A stretch of DNA of 64,000 nt from Macrostomum lignano (Eukaryota). The stretch spans positions 154,720-218,719 of the forward strand of contig NIVC01000799.1 in NCBI GenBank assembly GCA_002269645.1, read 5' to 3'. The position numbers were made by a program, and so were the translations under genes. Positions 1 through 59,956 of the stretch are shown here, in pieces (position 1 is the first letter of the stretch; each line of letters opens with the position of its first letter). A model generated the notes under the pieces. The model searched no databases, was not told where the DNA came from, and worked only from the letters and a program-made list of their open reading frames with translations.

Positions 1-59
1 ACGGCGTACTGCATATGTTCAAACGAATATAATTCATTTACGAGACCTGCACTACACAG

Positions 60-797
60 ACAAAATGTGCCACGTCACAAGAGTTTCCATGCATGACCTG
101 GCATGAAAAGACTTGGCTAGGAACCATTACACATATGTAAGTAGAATTTAAAATTCTTTTTAAAATTTTATGATTAAATAAAAACTTAACCGGAATTTAC
201 ATATGTACTTTTCTAAAATTCCAGATACGTTGATATCGATAAGCTACCGTTTTCTTCTATAACAAACAGATTGGCCTTCATTGTCAAGTAAGTCTTGTCT
301 CGTACTCGTATATGTCGTATTTTTTGTAGGTTGAAAAAAATAATAAGCAGCCTAGTAATACTCTGAGCTCAGTGAAATATAAGAGAGGCGGGACGATCAC
401 CTTATTTATCAATTAATTTACAACAGCCAGTTGAGCAATCATAAGTAGGCAAAATTTACACTTCTAGGAAGAACAAATTTTACTAAAAGTTTCAATCAAA
501 ACATTTGGGAAAGAAATCTCGCACGACACATCGCCCACAGTACTAGAGACTTGGAGAAATACTATGTGAGTTTTCTGGGCAACTAATGTAATATATTACT
601 GTTATAATTCGATAGTCGAATTATTTTTTTACCCAAAGCAGTGCTATTGCATAACTAAAGAACAGTATAAAAATGACAGCATTCTAGAACGAGAAACAAA
701 GCTTACTGCAAAGGCAAACGCCGAAAGAAAAGCAGGGCAGAGTCAGCAGCAAAAAAGAAGCTCATCTGAATGGAAAGATGGGCGGTCAGCAAAGAGA
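60..797 (+). CDS. Fragmentary exons of an unidentified spliced gene or intron-containing transposon upstream of the exon array (5' end probably outside the window)
   Basis: AG/GT-bounded segments with open frames: 60-136 (TKCATSQEFPCMTWHEKTWLGTITH, phase 2), 225-287 (YVDIDKLPFSSITNRLAFIV, phase 2-2), 468-565 (RTNFTKSFNQNIWERNLARHIAHSTRDLEKYY) and 639-~797 (QCYCITKEQYKNDSILERETKLTAK...). Junctions 136/225 and 565/639 are phase-compatible. The others could not be resolved. Confidence 0.3.
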
Positions 798-1124
798 TAG
801 GATCTCAAAAAATTGCAACTCCTAGTAACTGAAACTCAATTGCAATAAGTGTTTTGTTCTCTAGGGCATTATTAAAACAAGCAAGCCTGCCTGCAGTCAG
901 CTAGTGAGAAAGTAAGTTGTTGCGGCACTATCGGGAAAGTGAAAATTGTACTCCATCTGACTCACACAAGCAGCAGCGTTGGGACAAACCTCGAGTATTT
1001 TAATTGTACAGTAAAATTTCATTGACAATGAAGCATTTATTAGAACAGCGACATTTAAATCTGTTTTCAAACAAATCAGACCGATTTCTCATGAGTTATT
1101 TTTCTTTTGTGCGCCCACGCACAG

Positions 1125-1186
1125 GTTCATCCGCATTCAAACTCGCCGCTGCATCCGTCATTTGGTTCACTTGCTGCTCACAAGCC

Positions 1187-1222
<36 letters not shown>

Positions 1223-3100
1223 GCTATCCGTGCAGGCAGTCAGTCTATTTGTGAATTTTCTGGTGGATCTGAAGAAAACCCGTCTGGCACAGGATTAAAG
1301 AGAAAGAGACGATCTGTTTTGGGTGAGTATTATCTGCTGTAGAAGTATTGTACACCAGAGTACTTGTGTTACCTGATAGAGCACAATTCAAAAGCAATGC
1401 AACAATCTCAGTGGCATTGTTGGGACACAAGCTACAAACGCAAAGAATAGTAAACACAGCCCAGCCTAGCTCAAGGCTAGTAATTTGTTGGGCATTTATT
1501 GGGACATTGCAGCCAGGCCTATTTTTTGAACAGCATTTGTTGGGTCGCACTTATTGGGACAATACTGATTCTAATCGCGACTACTTCTGAGTTCTGACTT
1601 TTCAAAACAGACCCAGCATTAGTTGAACACGTTCTATTAAAGGGTTCCTTTATAGCCTATTAATGATTACTAAAGCAAGCCTATCTTAATTGATTTCTTT
1701 TCCTCGCAGCTTCTGAAGTCAGCAACGCCAGCGACATGCCTAAGAGACAAGAATGCGCTTTAACGATCAGCAGCGAGCATTCTGATCTCGCCGCTGCATC
1801 CGTCATTTGGTTCACTTGCTGCTCACAAGCCGCAGCAGCAGCAGCAGCAGCCGCTATCCGTGCAGGCAGTCAGTCTATTTGTGAATTTTCTGGTGGATCT
1901 GAAGAAAACCCGTCTGGCACAGGATTAAAGAGAAAGAGACGATCTGTTTTGGGTGAGTATTATCTGCTGTAGAAGTATTGTACACCAGAGTACTTGTGTT
2001 ACCTGATAGAGCACAATTCAAAAGCAATGCAACAATCTCAGTGGCATTGTTGGGACACAAGCTACAAACGCAAAGAATAGTAAACACAGCCCAGCCTAGC
2101 TCAAGGCTAGTAATTTGTTGGGCATTTATTGGGACATTGCAGCCAGGCCTATTTTTTGAACAGCATTTGTTGGGTCGCACTTATTGGGACAATACTGATT
2201 CTAATCGCGACTACTTCTGAGTTCTGACTTTTCAAAACAGACCCAGCATTAGTTGAACACGTTCTATTAAAGGGTTCCTTTATAGCCTATTAATGATTAC
2301 TAAAGCAAGCCTATCTTAATTGATTTCTTTTCCTCGCAGATTCTAAAGTCAGCCACGCCAGCGACATGCCTAAGAGACAAGAATGCGCTTTAACGATCAG
2401 CAGCGAGCATTCTGATCTCGCCGCTGCATCCGTCATTTGGTTCACTTGCTGCTCACAAGCCGCAGCAGCAGCAGCAGCAGCAGCAGCCGCCGCTATCCGT
2501 GCAGGCAGTCAGTCTATTTGTGAATTTTCTGGTGGATCTGAAGAAAACCCGTCCGGCACAGGATTAAAGAGAAAGAGACGATCTGTTTTGGGTGAGTATT
2601 ATCTGCTGTAGAAGTATTGTACACCAGAGTACTTGTGTTACCTGGTAGAGCACAATTCAAAAGCAATGCAACAATCTCAGTGGCATTGTTGGGACACAAG
2701 CTACAAACGCAAAGAATAGTAAACACAGCCCAGCCTAGCTCAAGGCTAGTAATTTGTTGGGCATTTATTGGGACATTGCAGCCAGGCCTATTTTTTGAAC
2801 AGCATTTGTTGGGTCGCACTTATTGGGACAATACTGATTCTAATCGCGACTACTTCTGAGTTCTGACTTTTCAAAACAGACCCAGCATTAGTTGAACACG
2901 TTCTATTAAAGGGTTCCTTTATAGCCTATTAATGATTACTAAAGCAAGCCTATCTTAATTGATTTCTTTTCCTCGCAGCTTCTGAAGTCAGCAACGCCAG
3001 CGACATGCCTAAGAGACAAGAATGCGCTTTAACGATCAGCAGCGAGCATTCTGATCTCGCCGCTGCATCCGTCATTTGGTTCACTTGCTGCTCACAAGCC

Positions 3101-3142
<42 letters not shown>

Positions 3143-3751
3143 GCTATCCGTGCAGGCAGTCAGTCTATTTGTGAATTTTCTGGTGGATCTGAAGAAAACC
3201 CGTCCGGCACAGGATTAAAGAGAAAGAGACGATCTGTTTTGGGTGAGTATTATCTGCTGTAGAAGTATTGTACACCAGAGTACTTGTGTTACCTGATAGA
3301 GCACAATTCAAAAGCAATGCAACAATCTCAGTGGCATTGTTGGGACACAAGCTACAAACGCAAAGAATAGTAAACACAGCCCAGCCTAGCTCAAGGCTAG
3401 TAATTTGTTGGGCATTTATTGGGACATTGCAGCCAGGCCTATTTTTTGAACAGCATTTGTTGGGTCGCACTTATTGGGACAATACTGATTCTAATCGCGA
3501 CTACTTCTGAGTTCTGACTTTTCAAAACAGACCCAGCATTAGTTGAACACGTTCTATTAAAGGGTTCCTTTATAGCCTATTAATGATTACTAAAGCAAGC
3601 CTATCTTAATTGATTTCTTTTCCTCGCAGATTCTAAAGTCAGCCACGCCAGCGACATGCCTAAGAGACAAGAATGCGCTTTAACGATCAGCAGCGAGCAT
3701 TCTGATCTCGCCGCTGCATCCGTCATTTGGTTCACTTGCTGCTCACAAGCC

Positions 3752-3793
<42 letters not shown>

Positions 3794-4401
3794 GCTATCC
3801 GTGCAGGCAGTCAGTCTATTTGTGAATTTTCTGGTGGATCTGAAGAAAACCCGTCCGGCACAGGATTAAAGAGAAAGAGACGATCTGTTTTGGGTGAGTA
3901 TTATCTGCTGTAGAAGTATTGTACACCAGAGTACTTGTGTTACCTGATAGAGCACAATTCAAAAGCAATGCAACAATCTCAGTGGCATTGTTGGGACACA
4001 AGCTACAAACGCAAAGAATAGTAAACACAGCCCAGCCTAGCTCAAGGCTAGTAATTTGTTGGGCATTTATTGGGACATTGCAGCCAGGCCTATTTTTTGA
4101 ACAGCATTTGTTGGGTCGCACTTATTGGGACAATACTGATTCTAATCGCGACTACTTCTGAGTTCTGACTTTTCAAAACAGACCCAGCATTAGTTGAACA
4201 CGTTCTATTAAAGGGTTCCTTTATAGCCTATTAATGATTACTAAAGCAAGCCTATCTTAATTGATTTCTTTTCCTCGCAGATTCTAAGTCAGCCACGCCA
4301 GCGACATGCCTAAGAGACAAGAATGCGCTTTAACGATCAGCAGCGAGCATTCTGATCTCGCCGCTGCATCCGTCATTTGGTTCACTTGCTGCTCACAAGC
4401 C

Positions 4402-4443
<42 letters not shown>

Positions 4444-5059
4444 GCTATCCGTGCAGGCAGTCAGTCTATTTGTGAATTTTCTGGTGGATCTGAAGAAAAC
4501 CCGTCCGGCACAGGATTAAAGAGAAAGAGACGATCTGTTTTGGGTGAGTATTATCTGCTGTAGAAGTATTTATTGTACACCAGAGTACTTGTGTTACCTG
4601 GTAGAGCACAATTCAAAAGCAATGCAACAATCTCAGTGGCATTGTTGGGACACAAGCTACAAACGCAAAGAATAGTAAACACAGCCCAGCCTAGCTCAAG
4701 GCTAGTAATTTGTTGGGCATTTATTGGGACATTGCAGCCAGGCCTATTTTTTGAACAGCATTTGTTGGGTCGCACTTATTGGGACAATACTGATTCTAAT
4801 CGCGACTACTTCTGAGTTCTGACTTTTCAAAACAGACCCAGCATTAGTTGAACACGTTCTATTAAAGGGTTCCTTTATAGCCTATTAATGATTACTAAAG
4901 CAAGCCTATCTTAATTGATTTCTTTTCCTCGCAGATTCTGAAGTCAGCAACGCCAGCGACATGCCTAAGAGACAAGAATGCGCTTTAACGATCAGCAGCG
5001 AGCATTCTGATCTCGCCGCTGCATCCGTCATTTGGTTCACTTGCTGCTCACAAGCCGCT

Positions 5060-5110
<51 letters not shown>

Positions 5111-5761
5111 GCTATCCGTGCAGGCAGTCAGTCTATTTGTGAATTTTCTGGTGGATCTGAAGAAAACCCGTCCGGCACAGGATTAAAGAGAAAGAGACGA
5201 TCTGTTTTGGGTGAGTATTATCTGCTGTAGAAGTATTGTACACCAGAGTACTTGTGTTACTTGGTAGAGCACAATTCAAAAGCAATGCAACAATCTCAGT
5301 GGCATTGTTGGGACACAAGCTACAAACGCAAAGAATAGTAAACACAGCCCAGCCTAGCTCAAGGCTAGTAATTTGTTGGGCATTTATTGGGACATTGCAG
5401 CCAGGCCTATTTTTTGAACAGCATTTGTTGGGTCGCACTTATTGGGACAATACTGATTCTAATCGCGACTACTTCTGAGTTCTGACTTTTCAAAACAGAC
5501 CCAGCATTAGTTGAACACGTTCTATTAAAGGGTTCCTTTATAGCCTATTAATGATTACTAAAGCAAGCCTATCTTAATTGATTTCTTTTCCTCGCAGATT
5601 CTGAAGTCAGCAACGCCAGCGACATGCCTAAGAGACAAGAATGCGCTTTAACGATCAGCAGCGAGCATTCTGATCTCGCCGCTGCATCCGTCATTTGGTT
5701 CACTTGCTGCTGCCAAGCTGCAGCAGCAGCAGCAGCCGCTATCTGTGCAGCAGTCAGTTAA
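1125..5761 (+). repeat. Tandem array of 8 exon(+intron) units, each 603 bp + 3n, with a variable (GCA)n tract; putative repetitive coding exons
   Basis: Unit spacings 630/639/651/651/650/667 bp. Units 2-8 have the acceptor ttttcctcgcag (unit 1 has cccacgcacag at 1124) and units 1-7 have the donor G|gtgagt, e.g. exon 1710-1952 = 243 nt. Only the poly-Ala frame is open from acceptor to donor. Ala runs are 14, 9, 12, 16, 16, 16, 20 and 8. The last copy (from 5598) ends in TAA at 5759-5761, with AATAAA near 5883. Confidence 0.85.
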
Positions 5762-5958
5762 TTCATGAGTTTTCTGGCGGAGCTGGTTATTTTTTTAATT
5801 TTCTGAATCGAGAAGCCGATTAACTGTTGTGTGCTTCACTGGAATATTATTTAGAGGACGCATTTTTTGCAGTCTGTTTCTAATAAAATCCGGTGCAATG
5901 ACCGCGGTAGAGCTCTAGCATTTGCTTTTTATAGTATTTGTGTATATTCTTTTTCAAG

Positions 5959-6097
5959 CTATGCTGGAATTGTTGGGACAGCCCTATCCACACTGGCTAT
6001 GGTGGAATTGTTGGGACAGCCCTATCCACACTGGCTATGGTGGAATTGTTGGGACAGCCCTATCCACACTGGCTATGGTGGAATTGTTGGGACAGCC
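5959..6097. repeat. 38-bp tandem repeat, about 3.7 copies
   Basis: ctatggtggaattgttgggacagccctatccacactgg repeated at 5959, 5997, 6035 and 6073 (partial). Confidence 0.9.
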
Positions 6098-6850
6098 CCA
6101 TACTATAGTGTGTGCTGGCTTCTGCTATAGTGTGGTTCATTTCCGCATCCTTTTACGTAGCATTCTGTGGGTCCGAATAGCTGACATGTACCTTTTGAGT
6201 AATTCTAGTGATTGTGTCATAATCAATAAAGTACATTTTTATGAACAGTGGAGTTTCGCTACAGAATTGTTTTTTCCCAGTGGCACTAAATGTAGCAAAT
6301 TTTGTTTATTCAGATCGTAAAATTTTTTTGATATGTGTCAATGTCGTTTGTCTTCGATAACCTTAAAGTCCCTTGCCATTTACCATCCTGTCTTCTATAA
6401 TCTATGATCGCTGAAATTATCTGGTGAAATTTGACGCGCTGATATTATTGCCTTAGTGGAATTCAGCAAGACACCAGGGTTTTTTAATTCTGTTTTAGAC
6501 AAGTATACATGTACAATCTGTTGTGAGTTCAATGCACCTCGAAAAATGCTTTCCAACTGTTTTCAGTAAGCCAAAAGCATGTTGTCAATAAAAATCTATT
6601 TGGTGGGTTGAAAATTGCCTGTGTGGGGACGTGTGTGTGTGTGATTTTTCGTGTGTCGGAGCAGTCCCAATATGTGCAAGTTTTTGCACACTTTGCCAAT
6701 AAGTGCCTCGTGCACGTTTGTGTGTGTGTGTGTGTGTACTGTGTGTGTGTGTGTGTGTTTGACTGACTGTTTGAATGTTTGCTTGGTTGGCTTCAATAGG
6801 GTTACACTCATAGACAATTATATAACACGGGCACTAGTGGAAATCTTAAT

Positions 6851-7707: not shown

Positions 7708-7918
7708 CCCTAACCCTAACCATAACCCTAACCCTAACCCTAACCCTAACCCTAATTGACGCTAGCCCTAACCCTAACGTAACCCTAACCCTAATTGACG
7801 CCAGACCTAACCCTAACGTAACCCTAACCCTAATTGACGCCAGCCCTAACCCTAACGTAACCCTAACCCTAATTGACGCTAGCCCTAACCCTAACTTAAC
7901 CCTAACCCTAATTGACAC
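7708..7918. repeat. Interstitial telomere-like (CCCTAA)n with a 39-bp higher-order unit
   Basis: CCCTAA runs followed by several copies of ccctaaccctaattgacgc(t/c)agccctaaccctaacgtaa. Confidence 0.85.
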
Positions 7919-8150
7919 CAGACCTGCTAGTTATATTGATGCACTTTAGACTTAATTCAATGAAATGAAAGCGAAACGAGACGAAAAATACTGTCTATGG
8001 CAATCACGAGCCAATAGGAGAGAACGAGGAGGAAAGGGATGTTATGAACAAGATAAAAATAACTGGCTCAGACTAGCACTCTATTCTATTATTTCCTCCA
8101 TAGTCAAAACACCAGTGTTAAAGAATATGAAGTTAAAACACCACTGTTAA

Positions 8151-8500
8151 AGTCGTCAGCCAAAGTCGTCAGCCAAAGTCGTCAGCCAGAGTCGTCAGCC
8201 AAAGTCGTCAGCCAAAGTCGTCAGCCAAAGTCGTCAGCCAAAGTCGTCAAGCTGCCAAAGTCGTCAATTTGCCAAAGTCGTCAGCCAAAGTCGTCAGCCA
8301 AAGTCGTCAATTTGCCAAAGTCGTCAGCCAAAGTCGTCAATTTGCCAAAGTCGTCAGCCAAAGTCGTCAAGCTGCCTGGAATTGGATGCCAAAGTCGTCT
8401 GGAATCACTCAGTTGTTGCAAGGTCAATGGGAATCACTCAGTTGTTGCAGGATCAATGGGAATCACTCAGTTGTTGCAGGGTCAATGGGAATCACTCAGT
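8151..8500. repeat. 13-bp minisatellite (gccaaagtcgtca) followed by a 29-bp repeat
   Basis: 13-bp units over 8151-8400. atgggaatcactcagttgttgcagggtca x ~3.5 over 8401-8500. Confidence 0.9.
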
Positions 8501-9139
8501 TGATCTAGGGTTGATTACTCAGTCAACTTTGCCTTCAGCTATACTCGTACTTCTAAAGCATTGGTTTGTCGTGGAAACCAAAAACATATTACAATATCTC
8601 GTAGATATCCTTAAAAATAAAAGTATGCAATCAAATGGGGCGTAACTTAATTTATATGCTACTAAGAGTAACTAAAGCAGCAAAAACGCCTAACAACTCA
8701 AAATTTCCAACTCAGATCCACAAGACTACACAGCGCAGCAAGAAAATAAATCCGCATGCAAACACTATATTTTGTTAATCGGAATACATTCAAATGCGCA
8801 TTATTATTAATTAAAATGATACCGATGTCATAACACTTTCAACTTTCATAATGTCATAACGCTTTCAAAGTTATGTCAGGGCTACAAAGATAATCGAAAT
8901 AGGTTGGACCAAGCAGAATTTATGACATAGAATGAAAAGATGCATTCGATAGTAGTTAATTTGAGACAGGGCAGCCCAGTAAGTAAAGCAAACAAAAAAG
9001 CTACTTTGATCCAACATGCAGACGCTTAAATTAAATGGACAAATTAAACTTTCTTCAACTGAATCAGACTGGTATGGTCTTGTATATCAGATGAAAAATA
9101 GCAACAGCAAGCTGGAAATCCAACCAATAACACCAACAC

Positions 9140-10325
9140 ACGAAGCCACAAATCTCACAGCTGAGGATCAAAGCCACAAATCTCACAGCTGAGGATCAAA
9201 GCCACAAATCTCACAGCTGAGGATCGAAGCCACAAATCTCACAGCTGAGGATCGAAGCCACAAATCTCACAGCTGAGGATCGAAGCCACAAATCTCACAG
9301 CTAAGGATCAAAGCCATAAATCTCACAGCTGAGGATCGAAGCCACAAATCTCATAGCTGAGGATCCAAGCCACAATCTCACAGCTGAGGATCGAAGCCAC
9401 AAATCTCACAGCTGGAGATAGAAGCCACAAATCTCACAGCTGAGGATCGAAGCCACAAATCTCACAGCTGAGGATCGAAGCCACAAATCTCACAGTTAAA
9501 CATAAAAGCCACAAATCTCACAGCTGAGGATCGAAGCCACAAATCTCACAGCTGAGGATCGAAGCCACAAATCTCACAGCTGAGGATCGAAGCCACAAAT
9601 CTCACAGTTAAACATAAAAGCCACAAATCTCACAGCTGAGGATCGAAGCCACAATCTCACAGCTGAGGATCGAAGCCACAAATCTCACAGCTGAGGATCA
9701 AAGCCACAAATCTCACAGCTGAGGATCGAAGCCACAATCTCACAGCTGAGGATCGAAGCCACAAATTTCACAGCTGAGGATCAAAGCCACAAATCTCACA
9801 GCTGAGGATCGAAGCCACAATCTCACAGCTGAGGATCGAAGCCACAAATCTCACAGCTGAGGATCGAAGCCACAAATCTCACAGCTGAGGATCGAAGCCA
9901 CAAATCTCACAGCTGAGGATCGAAGCCACAAATCTCACAGCTGAGGATCGAAGCCACAATCTCACAGCTGAGGATCGAAGCCACAATCTCACAGCTGAGG
10001 ATCGAAGCCACAATCTCACAGCTGAGGATCCAAGCCACAATCTCACAGCTGAGGATCGAAGCCACAAATCTCACAGCTGAGGATCGAAGCCACAAATCTC
10101 ACAGCTGAGGATCGAAGCCACAAATCTCACAGCTGAGGATCGAAGCCACAAATCTCACAGCTGAGGATCGAAGCCACAATCTCACAGCTGAGGATCGAAG
10201 CCACAATCTCACAGCTGAGGATCGAAGCCACAATCTCACAGCTGAGGATCCAAGCCACAATCTCACAGCTGAGGATCGAAGCCACAAATCTCACAGCTGA
10301 GGATCGAAGCCACAAATCTCACAGT
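9140..10325. repeat. 27/28-bp minisatellite downstream of eIF2-beta copy A
   Basis: ccacaaatctcacagctgaggatcgaag units with variants. It is the reverse complement of the array at 33490-36066. Confidence 0.95.
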
Positions 10326-10677: not shown

Positions 10678-13600
10678 TCACGTGGCCTTGGCCCTCTGCG
10701 CAGCTCTCCTGCCCACCTGGGCCTGAAATCCAGACTTGATGCTGGCAACTGAGCACCGACTGCCGCAGGTGCTGCACTGCAGGAAGAACAGCCGAGTCTC
10801 CTTAACGAGCTCAGTGTCGTGAGACCGGCACGTGTGGCACATCACGTACTCCTTGATGTACGAGCGCAGCACTGATTCAATGTTCTTAGTCTGGAATCTG
10901 CCCTTAATAATGAGCTGGTTGTTCCCATCAACCGACCCGGTGGTGCCCAGCTCAGTTAGAAGGTAAGCCAACAGGTGGTCTGGCTTCCTTCGAATCTGCT
11001 TGCTGATCTCCGTGAAGTTGGCAAAGGCGGTCTTCTTGGTTCCAACTCGCATCAGAGACGGAGGCTTCATCACCACCTTCTTCTTCTCCGACAGCATATC
11101 CGGGTTCCGCTCCATCATGGCGCGGAAGGCCCGGCTGAGCAGCTCGCTGTAGCTGTAATCCTTGTCCTCGCTTCCATCTCCCTCCACAGCTGACGCCGCG
11201 CCTTGGCCTCCGTCTTCCTCAGGCTGCTCAGCCGCCGCCGCGAGTCGCTCCTTCGGCGGCTTCTTCTTCTTCTTTGTTTCGAGGTTAAAGTCTGCTTCAA
11301 GCTCCTCATCCACTGCTGGGGTCTCCTCGGCCAGCTCCTTCTTCCTATTCTTCTTCTTTTTTATGCTCGGGTCGAACATCTGCGCGAGTCAAACAGGGGA
11401 GCGAAAGGCATGGCAAACAATCATAAATCATAATTATTAGTCGCTTAAAAGTGACACGGGCAATGCTTTTGAGTATTACAGTGCTAACTAAGACCACTCA
11501 GCTACATTCTAATTACCTAATTGACAAAATTTGATAAGAATACAACTTCACATTTTTGTATCCATAAAAGCTTGGGTATAGTATTTAAAATATATACTTG
11601 TACCAACAATGTGTTTTCACAGAGTATTTTTCTGAAACTTTATAACATATTTTGAGATACAAAGGTAGTGTTCCGCTATAAGGAGGGTCCATGTGCCATA
11701 GCCATAAACAAAAATATGGCTTATTCCAATTCTCTGTATTCCATAGCCATGGGGACCCCAAGATTCCCATATTCCCATAGAGCCATAGCTGTAGTTTTAA
11801 CAAAAAATCTAGGAAACCAAATATTTTGAACCTGGAAGATAACCTGGTGCTTAAACAACTGCAAATTAAGATAGAAAATAAAACAAACACTTGATTGCCT
11901 TTGTAGGGTTATATTTAATATTTTTACAAAGAGTAACAATACTTAATCACTACTGAAAGTACTACTGCTAACTTTTTCACATTAATAAAAGTCAGAGTTT
12001 GCTAATGTTTTATTGTACTTTATTAGGTATAATTTATAAGTTTTTAAGTCTATAATACAGTATTAATAAGTTTTAATCCATTAGTAAGCATTAAGATATT
12101 CCATTATCATTAATGGACTGCCATTAAGATTTTGTTGCACTAACAAATTAAAGAATTTGCAATAGTCAATAAGACCAAAGATCCAAAGAAAGAGCAAGAA
12201 TATATTTGACAAGAAGTTATATTATAATTAAATCTACCTATATGCCTAAATAATTTTTTTGTTTATGAGGATGACCATGCAATATTAACAAATCTTTTTA
12301 ATTATTGCTTTCATTATTAAAATATAAAGTAATTCTTGCCTATACCTACATATAAGCATTTATACTTGATTTATTTCTATACTATATATAATGTATATTA
12401 GCAATCTTTTATAACTTTCTACTGTGCCTGACAGTGCAACTGAAACAACCTTCTTTTTTATATTTTAATAATTAATTAGCTTTCAATTTTCAAATTTCTT
12501 GGAAGAAGAAACTTCTTACGTTTTCTACTTTTAGTATTCTTTTATATATAAGCTTGCTTCTTTTTATTTGTTACTCAATAAATTGTAAATCACTTAGATA
12601 AACTAGCATTTATATTTAGGCTACTATGCTTCAAACAATTTCAGTTAGGCCCTAATGGTAAGGTAATATTACCATATTACCAATCAGAGTGTTGCTAAGC
12701 ATAACATGCGCAACTGCTGGCCGACCTGGCCGATTTTGCCACCATAAATTGTGGTGGACCAGGGGTAAGTTGCAATAATGCCAAGCTTAAAAATAGACAT
12801 AGTACTAATTAGATGACGAGGCATTTAGCCTTATAAGACAGTCATAGTTACTCCTGCCGTTTACCCATAATTGCATTTACAGGTAAGTTGCATTTTTGGT
12901 CAAAAAAGTAAGTCGCATGGCCAGTGTAAATCAGGGGGGTTGCGCATGTATGTTGCTAAGCAATATTGAATCAATGTATCTTAAAAAGATTTTTCATTTT
13001 ATTTAATAAAAATAAATCAAAGCTCATTTGATATCAAACAATTGCACAAATATTTGCTAAAAATAGTTGAAGCAAGTCAACTTTTGTTAAAAGTTACAGA
13101 CAATTGTTTTGAATGTTTATCAAAATATTTATTGGAAATTAGAAAACCCTCAAAGACAAAAAATATTTTATAAAAAAAAGATATTTTGTTTCAAATTTTT
13201 TATACTAATTTTTAAATTTTATACTAAAAATTAGTATTGCTGTATGCAATACTAATTTTGCATACAGCAACTTTATTTTTGACCTCTGGGTTATTTTTTA
13301 TATTGGAATAATATCAAAAAACAATAATTTTCATTAGGCCTACTAAGTAGGCCCCTAGGCCCTAGGCTATATCTACTTGCCATGATCTAGATGGGTTGCC
13401 ATTATAAACTCGAAAAATCACATTGTCAAAAACAAGGCTCTATCACAAGCTTGAAAAGTCACAAGCTTAAAAAAATCACATTGTCAAAAAGTTTAGCAAA
13501 CATCATCACAAGCTCAAAAAGGCACAAGCTCTAACCCTAACCCAAAGGCACTAACCCTAACTCTAAGGCACTAGTACCCTGCCTAACCCTGAACTATTAC

Positions 13601-14628
13601 CTTAACCCTAATCCCAACCCTAACCTAAACCTAAACCCTAACTTAAAGGCACTAGTTCTTACCTTGACCCTAACCCTAAACCCTAACCTTAGGGCACAAG
13701 TTCTAACCCCAACCTTAAACTTAACCCTAAGCCCTAACCCTAAGGCATAAGCTCTAACCCTAACCCTATTCAAGCTTGTGATGGTAGTTACTAACCTTTT
13801 CGACGATGTGACTTTTCGAGCTTGTGAATTTTTGAGCTTATGATTTTTTGAGCTTATAACTTTTTGAGCTTGTTATGATGGTTGCTAAAACTTTTTGACA
13901 ATGTGATTTTTCAAACTTATGACTTTTTGAGCTTGTGATAGTGACTGCTAAATCAGTTTTTGACAATGTGATTTTTTGAGCTTATGACTTTTCAAGCTTG
14001 TGATAGTGGTTGCTAAACTTTTTGACAATATGATTTTTTGAGCTTAAAGTCGAGCTTGTGGGTTGCTAAATCAGTTTTTGACGATGTTATTTTTCGAGCT
14101 TATGAGTTTTTGAGCTTGTGATAGTATTGGCTCTAATTTTTTTGATGATATGATTTTTCAAGCTTATGACTTTTCAAGCTTGTGATAGTGGATGCTTTTT
14201 GACAATATGATTTCTTGAGCTTGTGATGGGCCTTCCATCCCATCTAGACTATGGTCCTTAATAAATATGTGTATCACAAAGTGCATGCTATATTAATATA
14301 CCAAAATTCAGGCATATATGTTAGCTATCAATATCATAAATATAGGCCTAGCTAGGGCAAGGTAGAAATTACAAATAAGATGTTAGAAATAGGCCTATCT
14401 AGCATACATGGTATAATTAGACCTAGGCCTAGGCTGCCTAGCCTATGGCTATAATTTTCTAAATGTGGAATAGGCCTAGATAGGCCTATTGCCATTGCCA
14501 AACATCAAATAACTAGAAATTATTTAACATAATTTCTTTTTACCCTATTTATCTTAAGCTCAACGCTCAAGCAAGCTAGGCTTGGTTTAAAAAATAACAA
14601 TGCTTACAGGCTCGGCAGGCTCATCCAT
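10678..14628 (-). CDS. EIF2S2: Translation initiation factor eIF2 beta subunit, copy A (about 240 aa)
   Basis: The main exon 11379-10678 encodes [10 protein letters not shown].., two Lys boxes, [22 protein letters not shown].. and the C2C2 zinc ribbon (CHTC..CSTC), all diagnostic of eIF2-beta. Its ATG directly follows the acceptor cgcag. An upstream phase-0 micro-exon at 14628-14608 (MDEPAEP|gtaagc) has its acceptor at 14677, and a probable non-coding exon donor CAG|gtaagc lies at 14825. Confidence 0.9.
12702..12950. mobile_element. Non-autonomous TIR element (MITE) carrying a 28S rRNA fragment
   Basis: Termini TAACATGCGCAAC...GTTGCGCATGTA, flanked by the direct repeat TGTTGCTAAGCA (12690-12701 and 12951-12962, a 10-12 bp TSD). 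It lies in the intron of eIF2-beta A. Confidence 0.7.
12804..12866 (-). pseudogene. 63-nt degenerate fragment of LSU (28S) rRNA, helix 69-71 region
   Basis: The minus strand reads gggtaaacggcaggagtaactatgactgtcttataaggctaaatgcctcgtcatctaattagt. The conserved eukaryotic 28S sequence, recalled from memory, is GGGTAAACGGCGGGAGTAACTATGACTCTCTTAAGGTAGCCAAATGCCTCGTCATCTAATTAGT. Confidence 0.85.
13386..14248. mobile_element. Foldback-type non-autonomous element with a telomere-like core
   Basis: Ends tctagatggg...cccatctaga. Subterminal repeat arrays are inverted (cacaagctcaaaaa on the left, tttttgagcttgtg on the right), with degenerate CCCTAA at about 13530-13770. Confidence 0.6.
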
Positions 14629-17731: not shown

Positions 17732-19663
17732 TCACAGTCCCGCTTGGTACCGCTCCGAAGGTCGTCGGGCCCTGGCCGAGCGCCTTGGTTGGACTTCGCT
17801 GGGAAGCCCCGCCGGCTGCGCCATTGCCGCCGCATCGCTGTCACCGCCGAGTTCGCCATGCACCAGCGGGTCGAGCTCGGCGTCCTGGTCGCCGTAGGCC
17901 CTAGCGCTTGTGGGGACCAACGCCTGTTGATTCCAGGTTGTGCCGTCGCTCAGCCAGTACGCGGCGCCGGCCTTGGTCATGATCTGTAGCGGGCCGGACA
18001 GTCTCGTGGCCAGCTTGCCCTTCTTGATGGGCCGCCGCACTCGGACCCAATCGCCTGGTCGGAGGTCGCTGACTCGCGCCCGGCGGCATAGGTCCGTGTA
18101 GCGCTTGGTCCGCTGTTGCCGGTAGTAGATGGTCTCGCGCAGTCGCCGTCCCTCGTCCGTCTCATTGATGTCTTTGGGCGGTGCCAGGGCAGTCAGCATC
18201 GTCCGCATCGATCGCCCTAGCATGAGCTCGGCGGGGCTCCTGCCCGTCAGGCTGTGCGGCGTGCTCCTGTAGACCTCCAGGAACTGGGTGATGGCGTCGG
18301 ACAGCGGCGTGCAGTCTGCCTTGGCCGCTCGAATGCTGGAAAGCAGCGTCCGGTTGAGCCGCTCAGTCTGGCCGTTCGTGCTCGGGTGGTAGAGGCTGGT
18401 CTTGCGGTGTTGGATACCCCGAGCTCGCAGGAACTCTGTGAAGGCCGCGCCGAACTGCGGGCCGTTGTCGCTGATGACCTTCTTGCAGAGACCCCAGCGA
18501 GCGAACAGGGACCGCATCACCTTGCAGACGGTTTCGGTTGTGATGCTAGCCGTGGCGAAGACCACCGGCCACTTGCTATGCAGGTCCGTAACCACCAGCA
18601 GGAACCGGGACGATTGCGGCGCTTCGTGCAGTTCACCGACGATGTCGACGGCGATCTCCTCCCACGGACCCGCGGGCCACTCGATCGGCTGCAGCGGCGC
18701 TGGGTGCAGCTTGAAGTTCTTCTCCGCCGTCTCACACGCGCCGCAGCCCCTGATGAAGGTTTCGACATCAGCGTCGAGTCGCGGCCACCAGACGGACTCT
18801 CGCAGGATCTGTTTTGTGCGCACCACGCCTGGGTGTCCGGTGTGCGCCTGTTCCAAGACGCCGCGCCTCAGCTCCGCCGGAATGACGGCTCGCTCCTGAA
18901 ACGCCAGGCAGGAAGCGTCGTGCCAGACGCTTAGGTGTTGTCGCGCCAGCAGGTACGGCTTGAGTTCGGAGTCCGCGGTGCGCCTGGGCCAGTCGCCGTT
19001 CAACACGTGTTGCCGCACCCGTCGCAGCGTCTCGTCCTTGGTCGTCGCCTCCGCCAGCTCGGACAGTGACAACGCGGGCACCCTGGGCATCGCGGTGTCG
19101 GGCAGCTGGACGAAGTTCATGTCGGAGCCGTTGCTCCACCGGGACAGGAGGTCGGCCATGCAGTTGCTCTCGCCGGGTAGATAGCGGACGTGGAAGTCAT
19201 ACTGTTGGTACCTGTCGCACCACCTGTGGATGCGGAGCGGCCGGTGCCCGGTGCCGCTAGGTCCCATCAGCAGCTGCCGCAGAGACTGATGATCCGTTCT
19301 GAGCTCAAAGTGCCTCCCGTACAGGAAGAAATGCCACTTTTCCATGGCCCAGAGACACGCCAGGGCTTCTCGTTCGTTGGCTGCGTAGCGCCGCTCGGTC
19401 TCTGTGAGCGCTCGGGCGGCGAAGGCGATCGGCCGCTCGACGCCGTCCTGCAGCTGGGACAGCTGGGCGCCCAGGGCGACTGAGCTGGCGTCCGTAGTGA
19501 CAATCGTAACGGCTGCGGGGTCGAACAAAGCCAAAACTGGCGGGCTGCTGACCGCCTGCTTCAGCGCGTCGAAAGACTGCTGGCACTCTTCGGACCAGCT
19601 GAACTCCGCGTCGGCCTTAAGCAGCTTGCGCAGCGGCTCCGTGATGTCCGAGAAGTGCGGGAT
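17732..19663 (-). pseudogene. pol C-terminal part: RT connection, RNase H and integrase
   Basis: The frame is open from PHFSDITEPLRKLL.. onward. It contains RNase H (TTDAS, NEREAL, TDH), integrase HHCC (HTGHPG..CGAC) and DDE (IAVD, ISDNG, NGQTER). Confidence 0.9.
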
Positions 19664-19986
19664 GGGGGAAAATGTTGTGTCGTGACTAGGAGCCCGTAAA
19701 AGGGCCGTTCGTCTAACTAACCTTTTCTTACTTTTTCTTACTACTCTACTTTAAGTAGTGCAGTTAATAAATTATTCGTATATTGTATTGTAATGTATCG
19801 TATTCACGTGACATTTTGGCGGTTGAATTTATCGATCGTGTAACAATTTACTGTTAAATATCAAATATAAGCGCGGGTTGCCCTAAGTGGAGCTCGTACC
19901 TTTTTTCCGGCAAAAAGTCTTACCTGCCACGTACTCGTTTCCTGTGTTAGTCTGTTGAGACACCACATTGGCGACGAGGATAGGAT
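19664..19986 (+). mobile_element. Inverted insert of the same family: PPT remnant + full LTR (19673-19967) + 18-nt PBS (tRNA-Ser GCU type)
   Basis: gggggaaaa-TGTTGTG...CACCACA-t-TGGCGACGAGGATAGGAT interrupts the codons F-I-P-H of pol, with GGAT on both sides. Confidence 0.9.
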
Positions 19987-21350
19987 GAAACGCCTGAGGA
20001 AGTTGGCGGCGCCCAGGAACGGCTGCAGCTCCTTCTGGGAGGTCGGAGCCCGGATCTCTTCGAAAGCACGCGTACGCGAATCGCCAACACGGAACCCGTC
20101 GCCGGAAACTAGGAAGCCGAAGAATTCGATCTGCGGCTGTCGGAACTCACATTTCTGCTTGTTCACTGTCAAGCCCCTGTCACAGAGTCGCCGCAGTAGA
20201 GCCTCCAAACAGCGGTCGTGCTCCGTCGTGGTGGCACCGAAGATGATGAAATCGTCGAGGATGTGCTCCACGCCGTCCAGGTCGGCCACCAGATCGTCGA
20301 GCATGCGCTGGAACGCCGCAGGCGCTGACGTCAAACCGAACGGCACTCGGCAGTACCTGTATAGGCCCTTGTGCGTGATGAAGGCTGTCAGGTCGCGCGA
20401 AGACTCATGCAGCTCCATCTGCATGTAGCCGGCCTTCAGGTCCACCTTGCTGAAGATCTGTCCTTTGGCCCCCTTGATCTTGGCAGCGATGTCGTCCAGC
20501 TGGGGCATCGGGTGTTGGTCGCATATCACCGCCTTGTTGGGCTCCCGGATATCGACGCAGACCCTGATGCTGCCGTCCTTTTTGGTGGTGGTCACCAGGT
20601 TTGACACCCAGCGACTCGAGTCGACTCGCTCGATGATGCCAGCCGCCTCCAGTTTGTCGAGCTCAGCCTCCACCAGCTGCTGCTTGGCCAGCGGTAGACG
20701 ACGCAGAGGCTGGCGCACTGGCGGCATGGAGGGGTCGATGACGGGCTTGTGCACGGCTCCGCTGCAGCAGCCGATCTGCTCGCTAAAGGCCGCTGGGAAC
20801 CGCGCCTCCAGCTGCTCCGCGACGCTGTTCACCTCGCTGACGTCCTCACAGGCTCACATGGAAACCGAGCTTATCCATGAGGTCTCGACCTGCGATGTTG
20901 TCGCCGTGCTTCGCGATGTAGAATAGGTGTTGCAGAGACCGGTTGTTGTGCTTAACGGGAACCGCCGCTTGGCCCACGAGATCGATCAGCTTGCCGCCGT
21001 ATGCGCGCAGCTTCATCGTTGTCGGCTGAGGTAGCACGTCGGTCAGGAGCGCGGCCGTGTCGGCGTTCAACAGTGACACCTTGGCGCCGCAGTCGATCAG
21101 AGTATTGACCGGCACCTCTGCTTGTCCGAGCCGCAGCTGCGCACGGATCTCACCGTCTCCCTGCACGGCGTATATAGTGACCGCCTCGTCCGGGCCGTCC
21201 TGAGCCTGGCCGGTCACTTGGAGCGCCTTGCTCCGGCAGCAACGGCTGAAATGGTTCATCTTGCCGCAGTTGTTGCAGGACTGCCCCTTCGCTGGGCAGT
21301 TGCCGTCGCCGTGACTGCGTCCGCAGCGAGAGCAGGCCTTGGCGGCGGGT
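19983..21350 (-). pseudogene. Truncated gag (zinc knuckles) + protease + reverse transcriptase, with a frameshift near 20845
   Basis: CSRCGRSH..CPAKGQSCNNCGKMNHFSRCC (Mag-type double knuckle), protease LIDCGA, and RT motifs SKVDLKAGYMQ, VPFGLTSAPAAFQR and ILDD. A TGA at about 20846 and a +1 shift separate PR from RT. Confidence 0.9.
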
Positions 21351-22160
21351 ACGTGTACTAACTGTGTACTGTGTACTAACACAGGAAACGAGTACGTGGC
21401 AGGTAAGACTTTTTGCTGGAAAAAAGGTACGAGCTCCACTTAGGGCAACCCGCGCTTATATTTAATATTTAACAGTAAATTGTTACACGATCGATAAATT
21501 CAACCGCCAAAATGTCACGTGAATACGATACATTACAATACAATATACGAATAATTTATTAACTGCACTACTTAAAGTAGAGTAGTAAGAAAAGGTTAGT
21601 TAGACGAACGGCCCTTTTACGGGCTCCTAGTCACGACACAACACAATCATTTTTTGCAAACAGGGAAAACAAGATATGTTATTTAGGAGGTTTTAAAGAA
21701 GATTTAGAAGATTGGATTAGGGTCATAGAATTCAGCTAATAGATTTTAAGGAATGTAATTTTGTCAATGGGAGTTCTATGGCCTTTCTCCAATAGAGGAG
21801 TTGGCGTTTTTTAAAAATAAATAAATATTTATTGGATTATCTAAGATCCATTTTCTTGACAATGCCATTTTTGTAAATAAATATTTGTATGCAATAGGGT
21901 CTAGGGCAACTTTGTAGTTGTACCATGTGCATTGGTATACAAAAATTTACTTCTATATGCAATAGTTAAACTCTGGTATGCAGTCTGCAGGCCAAAATAT
22001 TTGTATGCATAGTCTATATTTTGGAGGCTATTGTGTAGGACTATATTTATATTAGTATATTGATAAATCAATGATGTGTATTTGTCTAGTCTCCCAATTT
22101 TTGCCTACTATAATCCTAATATAGCTTTAAATATCATTTAGCCCTTTTTGCATCCATTGC

Positions 22161-25256: not shown

Positions 25257-28200
25257 ATGGACATGGAGGAATCATCTGAACCAGTAAGTGTATACTAGCA
25301 GCCTACCAATTCATTTATTGAGGTATAAGCAGTGGTGTTGGAGCCAGTAGTGGATCCAGAAAATTTTGAATTGGGGGCACAGACTACTAAGCCAGGTACA
25401 TATATATGCATATCATGTACAAGTATTATATACATGATAATGTGTATTTTACATATAAAAAACTCGATGGGGTAGGCGCACCTTGTGCACCCCCTCTAAA
25501 TCTGCTATTGGTTAGAGCATATTTCAAATTGGGAGGGGCCATTGTTGTATTGATGTGAGGGCACATTGCATGGCTCTGGCTGAAGTCATCATATTTGAGA
25601 TTGTCATATTTGGTTACAAGAAAAACAACTAAATTATATAAATCATGATTGTCTTAGCATTAGGCAATACTGCATTCACTAAATCATTATATTATATTTC
25701 ATTGGCTGCGCAAGGATATGGGCTCTCATAGCAGCAATATGTTCTTATTTGCCAACAAAATGATTTTCAACTGTAAATTACATTCATACCATTCACTTAA
25801 AAGATAGGCCTATAAAAGCCTTGTACTAATTCCTATATTAAAGTTAATACTAATAGTCTAACTGAATATTTAAGTTTTAATTAAGAATGATAGAAAGATT
25901 GCCTTGAAATGGTTTGATAGGCTAGGGCCTAACTCTATAATTAGAAGCAGATGTATTTTTTAAACTTGAGTCAAGTTATATTATTTTTTAGCTATTATAA
26001 AAATTTGCTTCAACTTATTCTAGGGTCCTATATTTTTTGTTTCATTTGGTTTCATTTTCAAGAAACTTAATGAATTCATGATATTCAAATGTTAACATCT
26101 TATGGATTGCCCCAACCAAGTTTTCATCTTTATATGATAATTTAGAATATAACAATTTTGACCATATCCCATTGTACATGTCAATGTGCTCAAGCAAGTT
26201 AATGTGCCTTTAGATTAGCCTAAAAATGTATATCTTTAATTTACAAAATGGCATTCTTTCATTTTATGATCACTTAGCACTGTCCCTATGGGAGTCGGGA
26301 CTTTCGTTATACAATCCCCCCACAGAGGACAGAAAATTGCTCTTAAAATCAAACTTCAAAATGGGACCACTTCTGTGTCATTTTAATATAAAATATTGTG
26401 TCTTATAGAAGTTAGAAGCCTATCCTTATATTTACTTTTGTTATGCGATCATTTAAATGGTGAATTTATATGCAGATAATTGCAAGACGAAACCAAAAGA
26501 GCTTGTAGATTTCGACTTACAATCACACCAATAGTAAAATTGTATTGGAAAGATTGTATGACAAAATGGTAGGAAATTGTCACTATAATAGACGTTTCAA
26601 CCAAACAATCAATTGCAGCCTCTAATATGTCTACAAACTGAAAGCCCCCTGGCTCTTTTTACATGGCTCTTTTTGTATGCCTTTTTGGGCACCGCCGCCG
26701 CCCTATGCCCCCCTTCATTTTCGTCATACGTTCACCCCTCAATATAACACATAGGTCTAATGAACTGGGGGGATTTTATGACAAAAGTGAGGGGGTGGCG
26801 CTTGTGAATCTTATAATGAATACAATTTTATTCTTGAACCCTGTAGATCAATGATGGAGATCAATGTAGCAGTTCGTATCTTAAGTTGTCGTGAACTAGT
26901 GCAACTTCACCAGGGATGTAATGTGTAATCCATTTACTTTCGTCATACAATCCCTTTAATATAATTCTATCAATGCGGTGATCATAATTCAAAACCTACA
27001 AGCTCTTTCAGTTTTGTCTTGTGAATATAATATAAGTTAAGATAATATAAGAACATATAAGTTCACCATTTAAATGATCATATGACGAAAGTGAATATAA
27101 GCTATGTGCTTTCATAACTAATGCTATGCCCACGATCCTCAAGTTGATTGAAAAGTGAGTTGCAGTGATGAATTAGGTTGACTGGAAAGTGAGTTGCAAT
27201 GATTTTGTTCTTGGAAAATAAATGTGAAACATACTTTTTGATAAACTAAAGTGTCTTTTTTGACTCTTTTTAATGGGGATCGTAAGACAAAACTTGACCT
27301 TATCAGGGATTGTAAAACAAAAGAATGCCTACAAAATTAATGATTTTTCAATTACAAAAGCCAATCCTATATACTAAAAATGGTCTGTCTGTGTCTATCT
27401 ATCTATCTATCTATCTATCTATGTGATCGATTAGAGAAAAAATGGCTGGACCGATTTTGTTCGAACTTGCACTGTTCGATCAGAAATTTTCCCGTGACGG
27501 TACATGCATCGTGGCTAAGAAATTGCTCAATGCTAAAGGCATTAAATATTCGAAAAACATGCTTTTTTGCAAAGGTCAAGCAAACTTTTTGACTTGAAAT
27601 GCATTGTAAGAATGCTAGAGAAAAAACTGACTGGTTGAATTCTGACTCTGAAATAGATTGCATCATAACTGAATTGTAACTCCGACTTGAATTGAAAATG
27701 CAGTGTGGAAGCGTAGCACCAGACTTGATTTAAATTGCGTAACCATATTGTTAACTGATACTGACTGACTGAGAAATTGATTATGTCATAACTGCTTCGT
27801 GTGATTTACTCTATGCTTGGATTTTAAAATGTTGAATTATATAAGTGCAAAATTTGATGTTATCAAAACGATGAGAGCTAGCGTAGAGGTGAACAAACTG
27901 AACTGCTAAATGCAGCGACGATGGTTCGAATTTTCATAGAGTATAATTTTTTTAATTAAAGCTTTTCAACGTCAGGAAAACTAAAAGACTTTTTTAAAAG
28001 AAGCGTCATGTAATGAATCATAGAAGCGTCATGTAAACAATCATAGAAGCGTCATGTAAACAATCATAAAAGCGTCATTTAAAAAATCATAGAAGCGTCA
28101 TGTAAAAAATCATAGAAGCGTCATGTAAAAAATCATAGAAGCGTCACGTAAAAAATCATAGAAGCGTCATGTAAAAATCGTAGAAGCGTTATATAAAAAT

Positions 28201-33143: not shown

Positions 33144-33489
33144 CACTGTTAGGGAGAAGAGCTGGATAATGAGGGCATTGCTCTGTGTATGAAGATGGTT
33201 GCTGACTGATTGATTGTCCATGTCTTGTGCTGCATGAACTTGACTGCTGGCGGGTGAACTTTATGTGGCAATGTTGGGCTCAAATATGTACACCAGTTGA
33301 ATGCTTAAGTGTCTGAATGGCAAATATAAGCTGAGAATTCATTGTCAGAAGTGAAGCTGTTAAGTGGATGGGTATAAGTTATCTATTCAGTGCATATTTG
33401 CTGTCAAACTGCAGTAAACTTGCTAGCAAAAATTGGTTGTTGCCTTTATCTAAATTGACCGGCTTCGGAGTCTTAAGACCTGGGTGCGA

Positions 33490-55181: not shown

Positions 55182-58284
<3,103 letters not shown>

Positions 58285-59177: not shown

Positions 59178-59956
<779 letters not shown>

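Follow-up and report, generated by a model that had tools for sequence, protein, structure and literature searches.

A spliced exon array of variable unit number inside a dispersed element of the flatworm Macrostomum lignano

The subject of this analysis is a window of 64,000 nt, i.e. the last 64 kb of the Macrostomum lignano contig NIVC01000799.1 in the assembly Mlig_3_7, and specifically a tandem array of eight near-identical exon–intron units that occupies positions 1125–5761 of its plus strand. A preliminary description, made from the letters of the window alone, had taken the array for a young, copy-number-variable coding array, potentially tunable by splicing. Our results support that interpretation in part. 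The eight units were confirmed base for base, with all details re-derived from the sequence; the array is not a single young locus, however, but the inner portion of an element with sharp boundaries that is dispersed over at least seven unrelated sites of the genome. The account that we favour, and that we regard as somewhat more probable than not, is that the array belongs to a recently mobilised, non-autonomous DNA element of M. lignano.

Anatomy of the array and evidence for its splicing

The window matches NIVC01000799.1 with 100% identity over 14,999 nt. In the array, 300-nt segments (n = 7) repeat every 630–663 nt at 99–100% identity, far above chance. Every unit contains a GT-AG intron (GTGAGT...CGCAG) with a consensus donor, a polypyrimidine tract and an acceptor: with a slash marking the splice site, the donors read TTTTGG/GTGAGTAT in all seven introns (core TTGG/GTGAGT), and the internal acceptors, again seven out of seven, read TTGATTTCTTTTCCTCGCAG/ (or, cut differently, TTCCTCGCAG/). 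These sites agree with the cis-splice motifs of the species, GT[GA]AG and CAG (PMC8629364). A single open frame runs across the exons, beginning two bases into each exon and leaving one base over at its end, and all introns are therefore in phase 1, the codon at the junction being G/CT (Ala) or G/AT (Asp). Translated, the module reads S[EK]VS[NH]ASDMPKRQECALTISSEHSDLAAASVIWFTCCSQ(A)nIRAGSQSICEFSGGSEENPSGTGLKRKRRSVL, and a tryptic peptide spanning the junction of two modules would be SVLASEVSNASDMPK. The alanine tract is encoded by GCC-(GCA)n-GCC-GCT.

The array is entered through a polypyrimidine tract and an AG acceptor at 1105–1124, conserved in four aligned copies of the element, which precede exon 1 (1125–1322), a truncated and diverged first unit (SSAFKLAAAS...) with 14 alanines and no ATG. 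Four TT(G/A)TTGGG(A/T)C motifs occur in intron 1 (1323–1709; 387 nt), together with an ATTAAA (1636) whose distance to the following acceptor is 74 nt. The following exons are exon 2 (1710–1952; variant A, i.e. Ala-SEVSN; nine alanines; with the first ATG in the poly-Ala frame at 1736), exon 3 (2340–2591; variant B, Asp-SKVSH; 12 alanines), exon 4 (2979–3242; variant A; 16 alanines), exon 5 (3630–3893; variant B; 16 alanines), exon 6 (4281–4543; variant B; 16 alanines) and exon 7 (4935–5210; variant C, Asp-SEVSN; 20 alanines). They are separated by introns 2 (1953–2339), 3 (2592–2978), 4 (3243–3629), 5 (3894–4280), 6 (4544–4934) and 7 (5211–5597), six of the seven introns measuring 387 nt and intron 6 391 nt because of a TATT insertion at 4571–4574. 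The coding part of the terminal exon (5598–5761; eight alanines) has the tail ...CCCQ(A)8ICAAVS, here termed 'alpha', and closes with a TAA at 5759–5761; the poly(A) signal AATAAA at 5882–5887 is conserved in all copies that include the 3′ end. All these features lie on the plus strand.

With respect to the peptide pattern per unit, the eight poly-Ala lengths in exons 1–8 (here re-derived from the translation), the succession of variants over exons 2–8 (A,B,A,B,B,C,C) and the stop codon and poly(A) signal of the last unit, our reading agrees with the preliminary description. The same is true of the symmetric phase-1 exons with lengths divisible by three, as far as the exons of 243, 252, 264, 264 and 276 nt are concerned; exon 6, with its 263 nt, is the exception. 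It bears the 1-bp deletion reported earlier, which is present in the assembly as the loss of one A at 4285–4287 (AAAG to AAG) and shifts the frame. This deletion may be an assembly error, since it falls in a run of A in a long-read assembly in which other copies of the element show frequent length errors of 1–3 nt, in exons and introns alike. The separate acceptor assigned to the first unit stands and is the conserved one described above, whereas an upstream coding exon or a start codon to go with it was not found. Every unit also contains an 80-codon intronic open reading frame (ORF) on the plus strand (e.g. 1348–1590) and a 101-codon ORF on the minus strand (e.g. 1245–1550), both with non-ATG starts and no database match, so that ORF length alone is no evidence of coding.

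Spliced plus-strand transcripts using the predicted sites had been anticipated, and the public annotation contains their traces. The GenBank annotation of Mlig_3_7 was made only from stranded RNA-seq (StringTie) and a mapped de novo transcriptome, with no ab initio prediction (PMC5730564). The GenBank proteins P0002, P0003, P0008 and P0034–P0045 have their units joined at RRSVL/ASEVSN or at RRSVL/DSEVSH or DSKVSH, i.e. these transcript-derived coding sequences (CDSs) hold the predicted junctions. One of the models lies in the window: gene BOX15_Mlig029855g38 (3056–4999, plus strand), a partial CDS of 154 amino acids that links exon 4, one B exon and exon 7 at the predicted junctions. The models thus support the view that the array is transcribed from the plus strand, the strand being assigned from GT-AG polarity, and that its introns are predicted to leave by cis-splicing; this speaks against the case that the preliminary description had named as refuting it, i.e. 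no spliced transcripts at these sites, or transcription from the other strand only or as unspliced satellite RNA. As we read them, they prove spliced junctions in RNA, and neither which copy is expressed nor exon skipping. Up to eight contigs are assigned one and the same short GenBank protein, in which the alanine tract is collapsed to 7 as against 9–20 in the genome, and some models extend over one, two or about ten additional units. Since such unit-skipping models are one collapsed de novo transcript mapped onto interchangeable exons, they are uninformative on exon skipping, and the 'splice-tunable' array is a formal possibility only.

The family carries more than 39 gene identifiers in GenBank and UniProt, some with misleading domain names. 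The UniProt models, which derive from the ML2 assembly, translate the array in all three frames; their names (Dymeclin, UCH, Rho-GAP) mislead, and we accord them no value as evidence. As a side observation, P0015, P0024–P0030 and P0049 are repeat-only models in several frames, named as Dymeclin, UCH, Rho-GAP, BAF250_C or DRIM domain-containing proteins, and these names may be either artefacts or a sign of element copies inside the respective genes. An alternative donor, CCC/GTC(C/T)GG, occurs in many such models and leads from the poly-Gln frame into the poly-Ala frame of the next exon.

The dispersed element and the dynamics of its arrays

Copies were found by fetching the contigs that encode the GenBank proteins, which gave 16 loci from about 14 contigs. 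Besides the array, all of these loci share a 2.46-kb 5′ arm and a 3′ arm of 0.88–0.96 kb, and outside these the similarity ends abruptly. The window copy is about 8 kb long and comprises the 2.46-kb 5′ arm, eight units of 0.63–0.66 kb and a 0.96-kb 3′ arm. Its 5′ arm begins 1,328 nt before the window, at position 5617 of locus L012; the distal 1.1 kb of this arm (1–1124, plus strand) has no convincing coding exon and is 95.7–100% identical with all other copies. The 3′ arm (5762–6720, plus strand), i.e. the 3′ untranslated region and flank, includes at 5958–6098 (plus strand) a 38-bp minisatellite with 3.7 copies here, variable among the element copies and with ATTGTTGGGAC in each repeat. Just beyond the 3′ end of the element lies a (TG)n tract (6721–6757), and a matching TG-rich tract is found at the 5′ end.

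The 5′ end of the element is constant (.../TTTGTGCATTAGGCATTTCTTGGGAC, the slash here marking the boundary), as is the 3′ end (...AATAAGTGCCTCGTGCACGTTTG/, at 6720 in the window). The sequence outside differs at all seven 5′ junctions seen, six distinct outer sequences occur on the 3′ side, and every outer flank is (TG)n or TG-rich. Between copies, the arms are 96.3–99.96% identical (0.04–3.7% difference). The copy on NIVC01001124 (L004) differs from the window copy by no mismatch in the 2,458 nt of the 5′ arm and by one in the 3′ arm, its outer flanks show over 5–7 kb no similarity to those of the window copy, and its array has 10 units rather than eight, with other poly-Ala lengths. Copies lie within the annotated spans of other genes: one of these genes, for a myosin heavy chain, is on the same strand, the other, for a TIR-domain protein, on the opposite one.

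We call the element mobile because identical copies stand in unrelated flanks. The inverted repeat made by its two termini is imperfect, with complementarity at 16 of 26 positions (GTGCA..AGGCA.TT.TTGG), and TTGGGAC-type motifs occur near both ends in opposite orientation. If one mismatch is tolerated, the motif TTGTTGGGAC has 34 matches in the window, where 3.5 would be expected. Of these, 32 are plus-strand matches between 1417 and 6093, situated in the introns, with four in each, and in the 38-bp minisatellite; such motifs may be binding sites of a transposase. Two copies show candidate duplications of the flanks: L001 has GTGTGCATG on either side and L003 has GTATGTG, in a register that is ambiguous with all flanks TG-rich. 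Taking structure and mobility together, we think it very probable that the carrier of the array is a non-autonomous DNA element that has moved recently. Two other identities were considered and rejected, i.e. homeologues of one locus in a polyploid genome, because the outer flanks are unrelated, and a Helitron or a long terminal repeat (LTR) element, because matching ends and long terminal repeats are both lacking. Concerning the surroundings of the window copy, about 1.36 kb just upstream of the element (positions 4105–5477 of L012), with 28/29-bp minisatellites, recurs at 97.8% identity at 8401–9774 of the window, 1.7 kb downstream of the element, so that the insertion site lies within a local duplication.

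The arrays vary among the copies much as the preliminary description, which spoke of a copy-number-variable array, would have it. The complete copies have 8, 8, 10, 11 and 18 units, and those cut by contig ends at least 15 to 23, hence a range from 8 to at least 23. The length of the alanine tract varies between 7 and 29, and the GCA length changes independently in each unit, in keeping with the slippage separate in each copy that had been proposed. As identical arms carry different arrays, unit number and GCA length probably change much faster than point substitutions accumulate (L002 was left out of rate estimates because of its many single-base indels). Some substitutions are fixed in all units of one copy and absent from other copies, from which it follows that the units are homogenised within a copy. 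The terminal exon stands outside this homogenisation and exists in two forms that differ by 1 nt in the length of the tail: the 'alpha' form, ...CCCQ(A)nICAAVS and stop, in the window copy, L003 and L004, and a 'beta' form, ...IRAGSQLIDEFSG[RG]AGYFLSF and stop (tail ...IRAGSQLIDEFSGRAGYFLSF), in L001, L005, L006 and L010.

These features can be assembled into the following account, which concerns a unit made of a phase-1-symmetric exon of 237–276 nt and a 387-nt GT-AG intron. The plus-strand transcript would lose its introns by ordinary cis-splicing and end at the AATAAA past the diverged terminal exon. Unequal exchange between near-identical units would alter their number and also homogenise them within a copy, slippage of (GCA)n would reset the poly-Ala length exon by exon, and the frame would be kept throughout since the units are multiples of three with matching phases. 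At the 5′ end, the acceptor of exon 1 is a candidate for spliced-leader addition because no upstream donor was found, and on this ground we suppose that it probably receives the spliced leader; translation would then begin in exon 2, where the first AUG in frame with the poly-Ala tract is found (MPKRQEC...). A bolder extension of the account, which we put forward only tentatively, is that we are dealing with a recently active mobile element that carries a complete spliced, expandable coding array as its cargo, so that both the number of modules and the number of gene copies evolve at the pace of transposition and unequal exchange, and that intronic copies, in either orientation, could feed in-frame modules into host transcripts by means of their strong symmetric splice sites. 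If this were true, the element would be a vehicle for the birth of new genes and for exon shuffling, caught at a very early stage.

Coding potential and rival explanations

Some indications that the array may encode a protein are structural. The open frame is limited exactly by consensus splice sites with matching phases, and its last exon, a diverged one, supplies a stop codon and a conserved AATAAA. Further, a second type of the repeat exists in M. lignano outside the window, in the UniProt entries A0A1I8FV09 and A0A1I8HX90 (P0032 and P0033; ASKVSNASDMPKREDSTSTINSEHSDIADALATSCLLAAQEQQQTLLMQTGCSQSIDDLSCGAKDNSSGKGLKRKRRSVL). This type-2 repeat, known from a predicted model, is about 50% identical to type 1, keeps the frame and the exon junction, and has a tail that resembles the longer terminal form. 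The block spanning the junction, GLKRKRRSVLAS[EK]VSNASDMPKR, is invariant between the two types, whereas the central region is replaced in type 2 by one without poly-Ala and without a hydrophobic core. RKRR/S, a match to a motif only, is present in every type-1 unit and in type 2. As judged from sequence, KRKRR would fit a furin-type cleavage site as well as the nuclear localisation signal (NLS). The estimated insertion energy of the hydrophobic core (+1.4 to +3.7 kcal/mol) makes it look signal-peptide-like in its place after the first Met and probably too weak for a membrane helix. We lean slightly against the conclusion that a functional protein is made. Should one be made, a secreted repeat protein with a furin-like cut at RKRR would seem somewhat likelier than a nuclear protein, though both readings rank below that of a function unproven.

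A number of results weigh against the account given above. Regarding the protein, an exhaustive HMMER search of 1.84 billion representatives gave no homologue outside M. lignano, a separate protein search had 30 matches, all of them from this species, Pfam returned no family above threshold for the repeat protein, only sub-threshold summed matches, and there was no match to it among the PDB sequences. Nor is the exon less diverse than the intron in a set of 83–104 units from nine copies: seven of 222 nt are variable in the exon and eight of 387 nt in the intron, a comparison of low power with units so young. Six of the seven exonic changes are non-synonymous and one is synonymous, which bears out the earlier remark that the few exon substitutions are mostly non-synonymous and do not demonstrate purifying selection. 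Regarding the start, neither a start codon nor a signal-peptide exon was found in the window or in the 2.46-kb 5′ arm, where the search for a phase-1 exon running from ATG to a donor yielded only weak GTAAC candidates. The spliced leader of M. lignano ends in ATG and its use follows an acceptor rule (PMC8629364); its AUG was tried as the start and rejected, since joined to 1125 it opens the poly-Gln frame with a stop inside exon 1. Regarding mobility, no transposase was found, none of the ORFs in the arms having a Pfam match, and there is no clear target-site duplication, the register being ambiguous at the TG-rich flanks of the copies seen. The pattern could also have arisen by ectopic recombination through (TG)n, or from a (TG)n-bearing circle integrated by recombination in microsatellites. 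Finally, assembly error in long arrays could account for part of the variation in unit number among copies, and the support for splicing is indirect, coming from a small number of de novo transcripts, with the poly-Ala collapsed to 7, that were placed on many identical loci.

Certain further searches were without result. No long ORFs were found 7–8 kb upstream, Rfam gave no match, and a single-sequence AlphaFold2 model had a mean predicted local distance difference test score of 42 and was unusable. Literature searches with the gene identifiers, the peptide strings, poly-alanine together with Macrostomum, and a 640-bp repeat in M. lignano returned nothing. An ATG at 1091 was discarded as a start because no copies but those of the window and L004 have it; in the rest, the sequence is AATAAG, one base longer.

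How should such a family be explained if not as the cargo of an element? It could be a selected host gene family spread by segmental duplication and encoding a secreted polyprotein, in which the Ala-rich segment after the first Met serves as a signal peptide and cuts by furin-like convertases at R-K-R-R/S, perhaps also at P-K-R/Q, release many identical peptides, more units meaning more product. We consider this unlikely; the following points speak for it. RKRR is the furin consensus R-X-K/R-R and occurs in every unit as well as in the diverged type 2, which also shares the junction block and, in its own tail, the beta-type tail; MPKRQEC...LAAASVIWF...(A)n-IRA/G shows the n, h and c regions of a signal peptide together with a valid -3/-1 cleavage pattern; each unit has three or four Cys and a NAS sequon; the core is too weak for a stop-transfer helix, so that internal repeats could cross the membrane; and UniProt automatically names several models 'Secreted protein'. 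On the other hand, the core of type 2 is not hydrophobic, and a signal function is thus no property of the family, the positions of Cys differ between the two types, no Gly precedes the basic site as an amidation signal, the N-terminal exon is missing, the exons are as variable as the introns and the exonic changes predominantly non-synonymous, many units are frameshifted, and sharp common ends in unrelated flanks favour an element over gene duplicates. The opposite explanation, to which we give a little less credence still, denies the protein altogether: the array would be a satellite-like repeat internal to a transposable element, its splice sites used and its frame a by-product of (GCA)n and a short unit. 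The additional intronic and minus-strand ORFs of each unit fit well here, as they make such ORF lengths not unusual, and so do the lack of a start codon in exon 1 and of detectable constraint, the restriction of the family to one species, the abundance of motifs resembling the element termini in the introns, and the translation of the array in all three frames by gene predictors. What this explanation accounts for poorly is a frame bounded so exactly by consensus splice sites in matching phases, a diverged terminal exon with its stop and AATAAA, and a repeat about 50% diverged that nevertheless retains frame, junction and tail.

Two more specific proposals appear to us very improbable. The array might be operon-like, each unit being a cistron MPKRQEC...RRSVLGEYYLL-stop of 78–89 amino acids read through the unspliced donor, with polyadenylation at the intronic ATTAAA and trans-splicing of the spliced leader at the next acceptor 74 nt downstream. 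An ATG-initiated ORF of this length and an ATTAAA 74 nt before each acceptor are indeed present in the units, and M. lignano does have operons resolved by its spliced leader (PMC8629364, PMC5730564). However, units are linked across the intron in the proteins derived from transcripts, the rule in PMC8629364 leads one to expect cis-splicing at acceptors such as these, which have a strong donor 387 nt before them, and the AUG of the spliced leader would open a short out-of-frame ORF in each unit. No more credible in our opinion is a single young nuclear repeat protein with KRKRR as its NLS and with the number of modules tuned by alternative exon inclusion. It is true that KRKRR fits a monopartite NLS and is conserved, that any subset of exons stays in frame, and that annotated models skip one, two or more units; the skipping models, nevertheless, go back to one short transcript on interchangeable exons, the array is not a single-locus one, and Cys-rich repeats with a glycosylation sequon would be unusual for a disordered nuclear protein.

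Comparable systems and other features of the window

The closest architecture is that of spider silk genes. Argiope MaSp2 and the flagelliform spidroins are built of iterated exon/intron units, sometimes of alternating types, with introns that in MaSp2 are 97.6% identical on average, and with poly-Ala blocks, all of which has been explained by unequal crossing-over and slippage (PMC9779670). The likeness to the Macrostomum array thus extends from homogenised introns (97.6% in MaSp2 versus 99–100% here) and poly-Ala to the alternation of units, which concerns every second unit in MaSp2 and takes the form A,B,A,B in our array. It is not a spidroin, however, as it is devoid of the N- and C-terminal spidroin domains (no Pfam match) and of Gly-rich motifs; its modules are about 80 amino acids long with a basic KRKRR, and they sit on a dispersed element with many copies, selection and the protein product being unproven.

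Other systems share some of these features. The kringle IV-2 region of human LPA likewise consists of in-frame tandem exon-plus-intron units whose number varies between alleles or copies and changes the length of the protein. Both the folded domain and the protein of LPA are known and the gene occupies one locus, whereas the Macrostomum family has no known domain, occupies several unrelated sites and has a microsatellite in every exon. Pack-MULEs, Helitron captures and MITE-derived satellites are non-autonomous and contain internal tandem repeats or captured gene fragments. The element resembles such transposons in its defined ends within unrelated flanks, the lack of a transposase, insertions in introns of other genes and the internal tandem array; it departs from them in the weak terminal inverted repeat (16/26), the ambiguous target duplication, the position of all its ends at (TG)n, and a cargo made up of an entire spliced unit, terminal exon and poly(A) signal included. 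Multi-copy peptides cut at dibasic or furin sites are known from FMRFamide-type precursors, yeast alpha-factor and insect apidaecin or Baramicin. Near-identical modules split by R-X-K/R-R and varying in number recall these precursors, but we found no signal-peptide exon, no amidation Gly and no match to a known peptide family, and the Macrostomum modules are long (80–90 amino acids) with a variable poly-Ala core.

The novelty lies in the combination: a dispersed element has a complete spliced array for its cargo. Should the array be translated, it would represent a very young, species-restricted repeat-protein family in which module number, poly-Ala length and gene copy number can be read from the genome, and the birth of a modular gene would be testable in a laboratory animal with transgenesis and RNA interference. 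If it is not translated, it makes a cautionary case of how a transposon-internal satellite with splice sites and an open frame gives rise to dozens of 'hypothetical proteins'. Either way, homogenised exon/intron repeats like those of spider silk genes arise in flatworms too, and can be spread by a mobile element.

The remainder of the window contains several other duplicated, repetitive or coding features. At 10678–11379 (minus strand) and 32442–33143 (plus strand), inverted with respect to each other and separated by about 21 kb, are two near-identical ORFs of 233 amino acids encoding eIF2-beta (Pfam eIF-5_eIF-2B, E = 7e-40), the first being annotated in GenBank as a spliced gene of 240 amino acids. 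Each adjoins an array of the same 28-bp minisatellite (9141–10324 and 33487–36069), and as the two arrays are also opposite in orientation, the ORFs and minisatellites together make up a large inverted duplication. The pol region of an LTR retrotransposon of the Ty3/gypsy type, in three ORFs with the Pfam domains RVT_1, RNase H, integrase zinc finger and rve, is found at 17732–21439 (minus strand) and has a GC content of 53–61% against about 40% around it. At 44657–46312 (minus strand), a GC-rich island harbours an ORF of 551 amino acids that is rich in tracts of Ala, Gln and Gly and contains an Ets DNA-binding domain (E = 4e-33). Interstitial telomere-like CCCTAA repeats are present at 7708–7925, here with a 39-bp higher-order unit, and at 13531–13768. 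Long mini- and microsatellites are unusually common (27999–30293, 40062–40926, 55437–56176, 59178–59956 and others), examples being a 23-bp unit repeated 100 times, units of 34 and 30 bp repeated 25 times each, (CTAA)195 and (TAGA)72. Long polypurine/polypyrimidine tracts, finally, extend over 16.9–17.4, 22.6–22.8, 53.4–54.7 and 62.8–63.5 kb.

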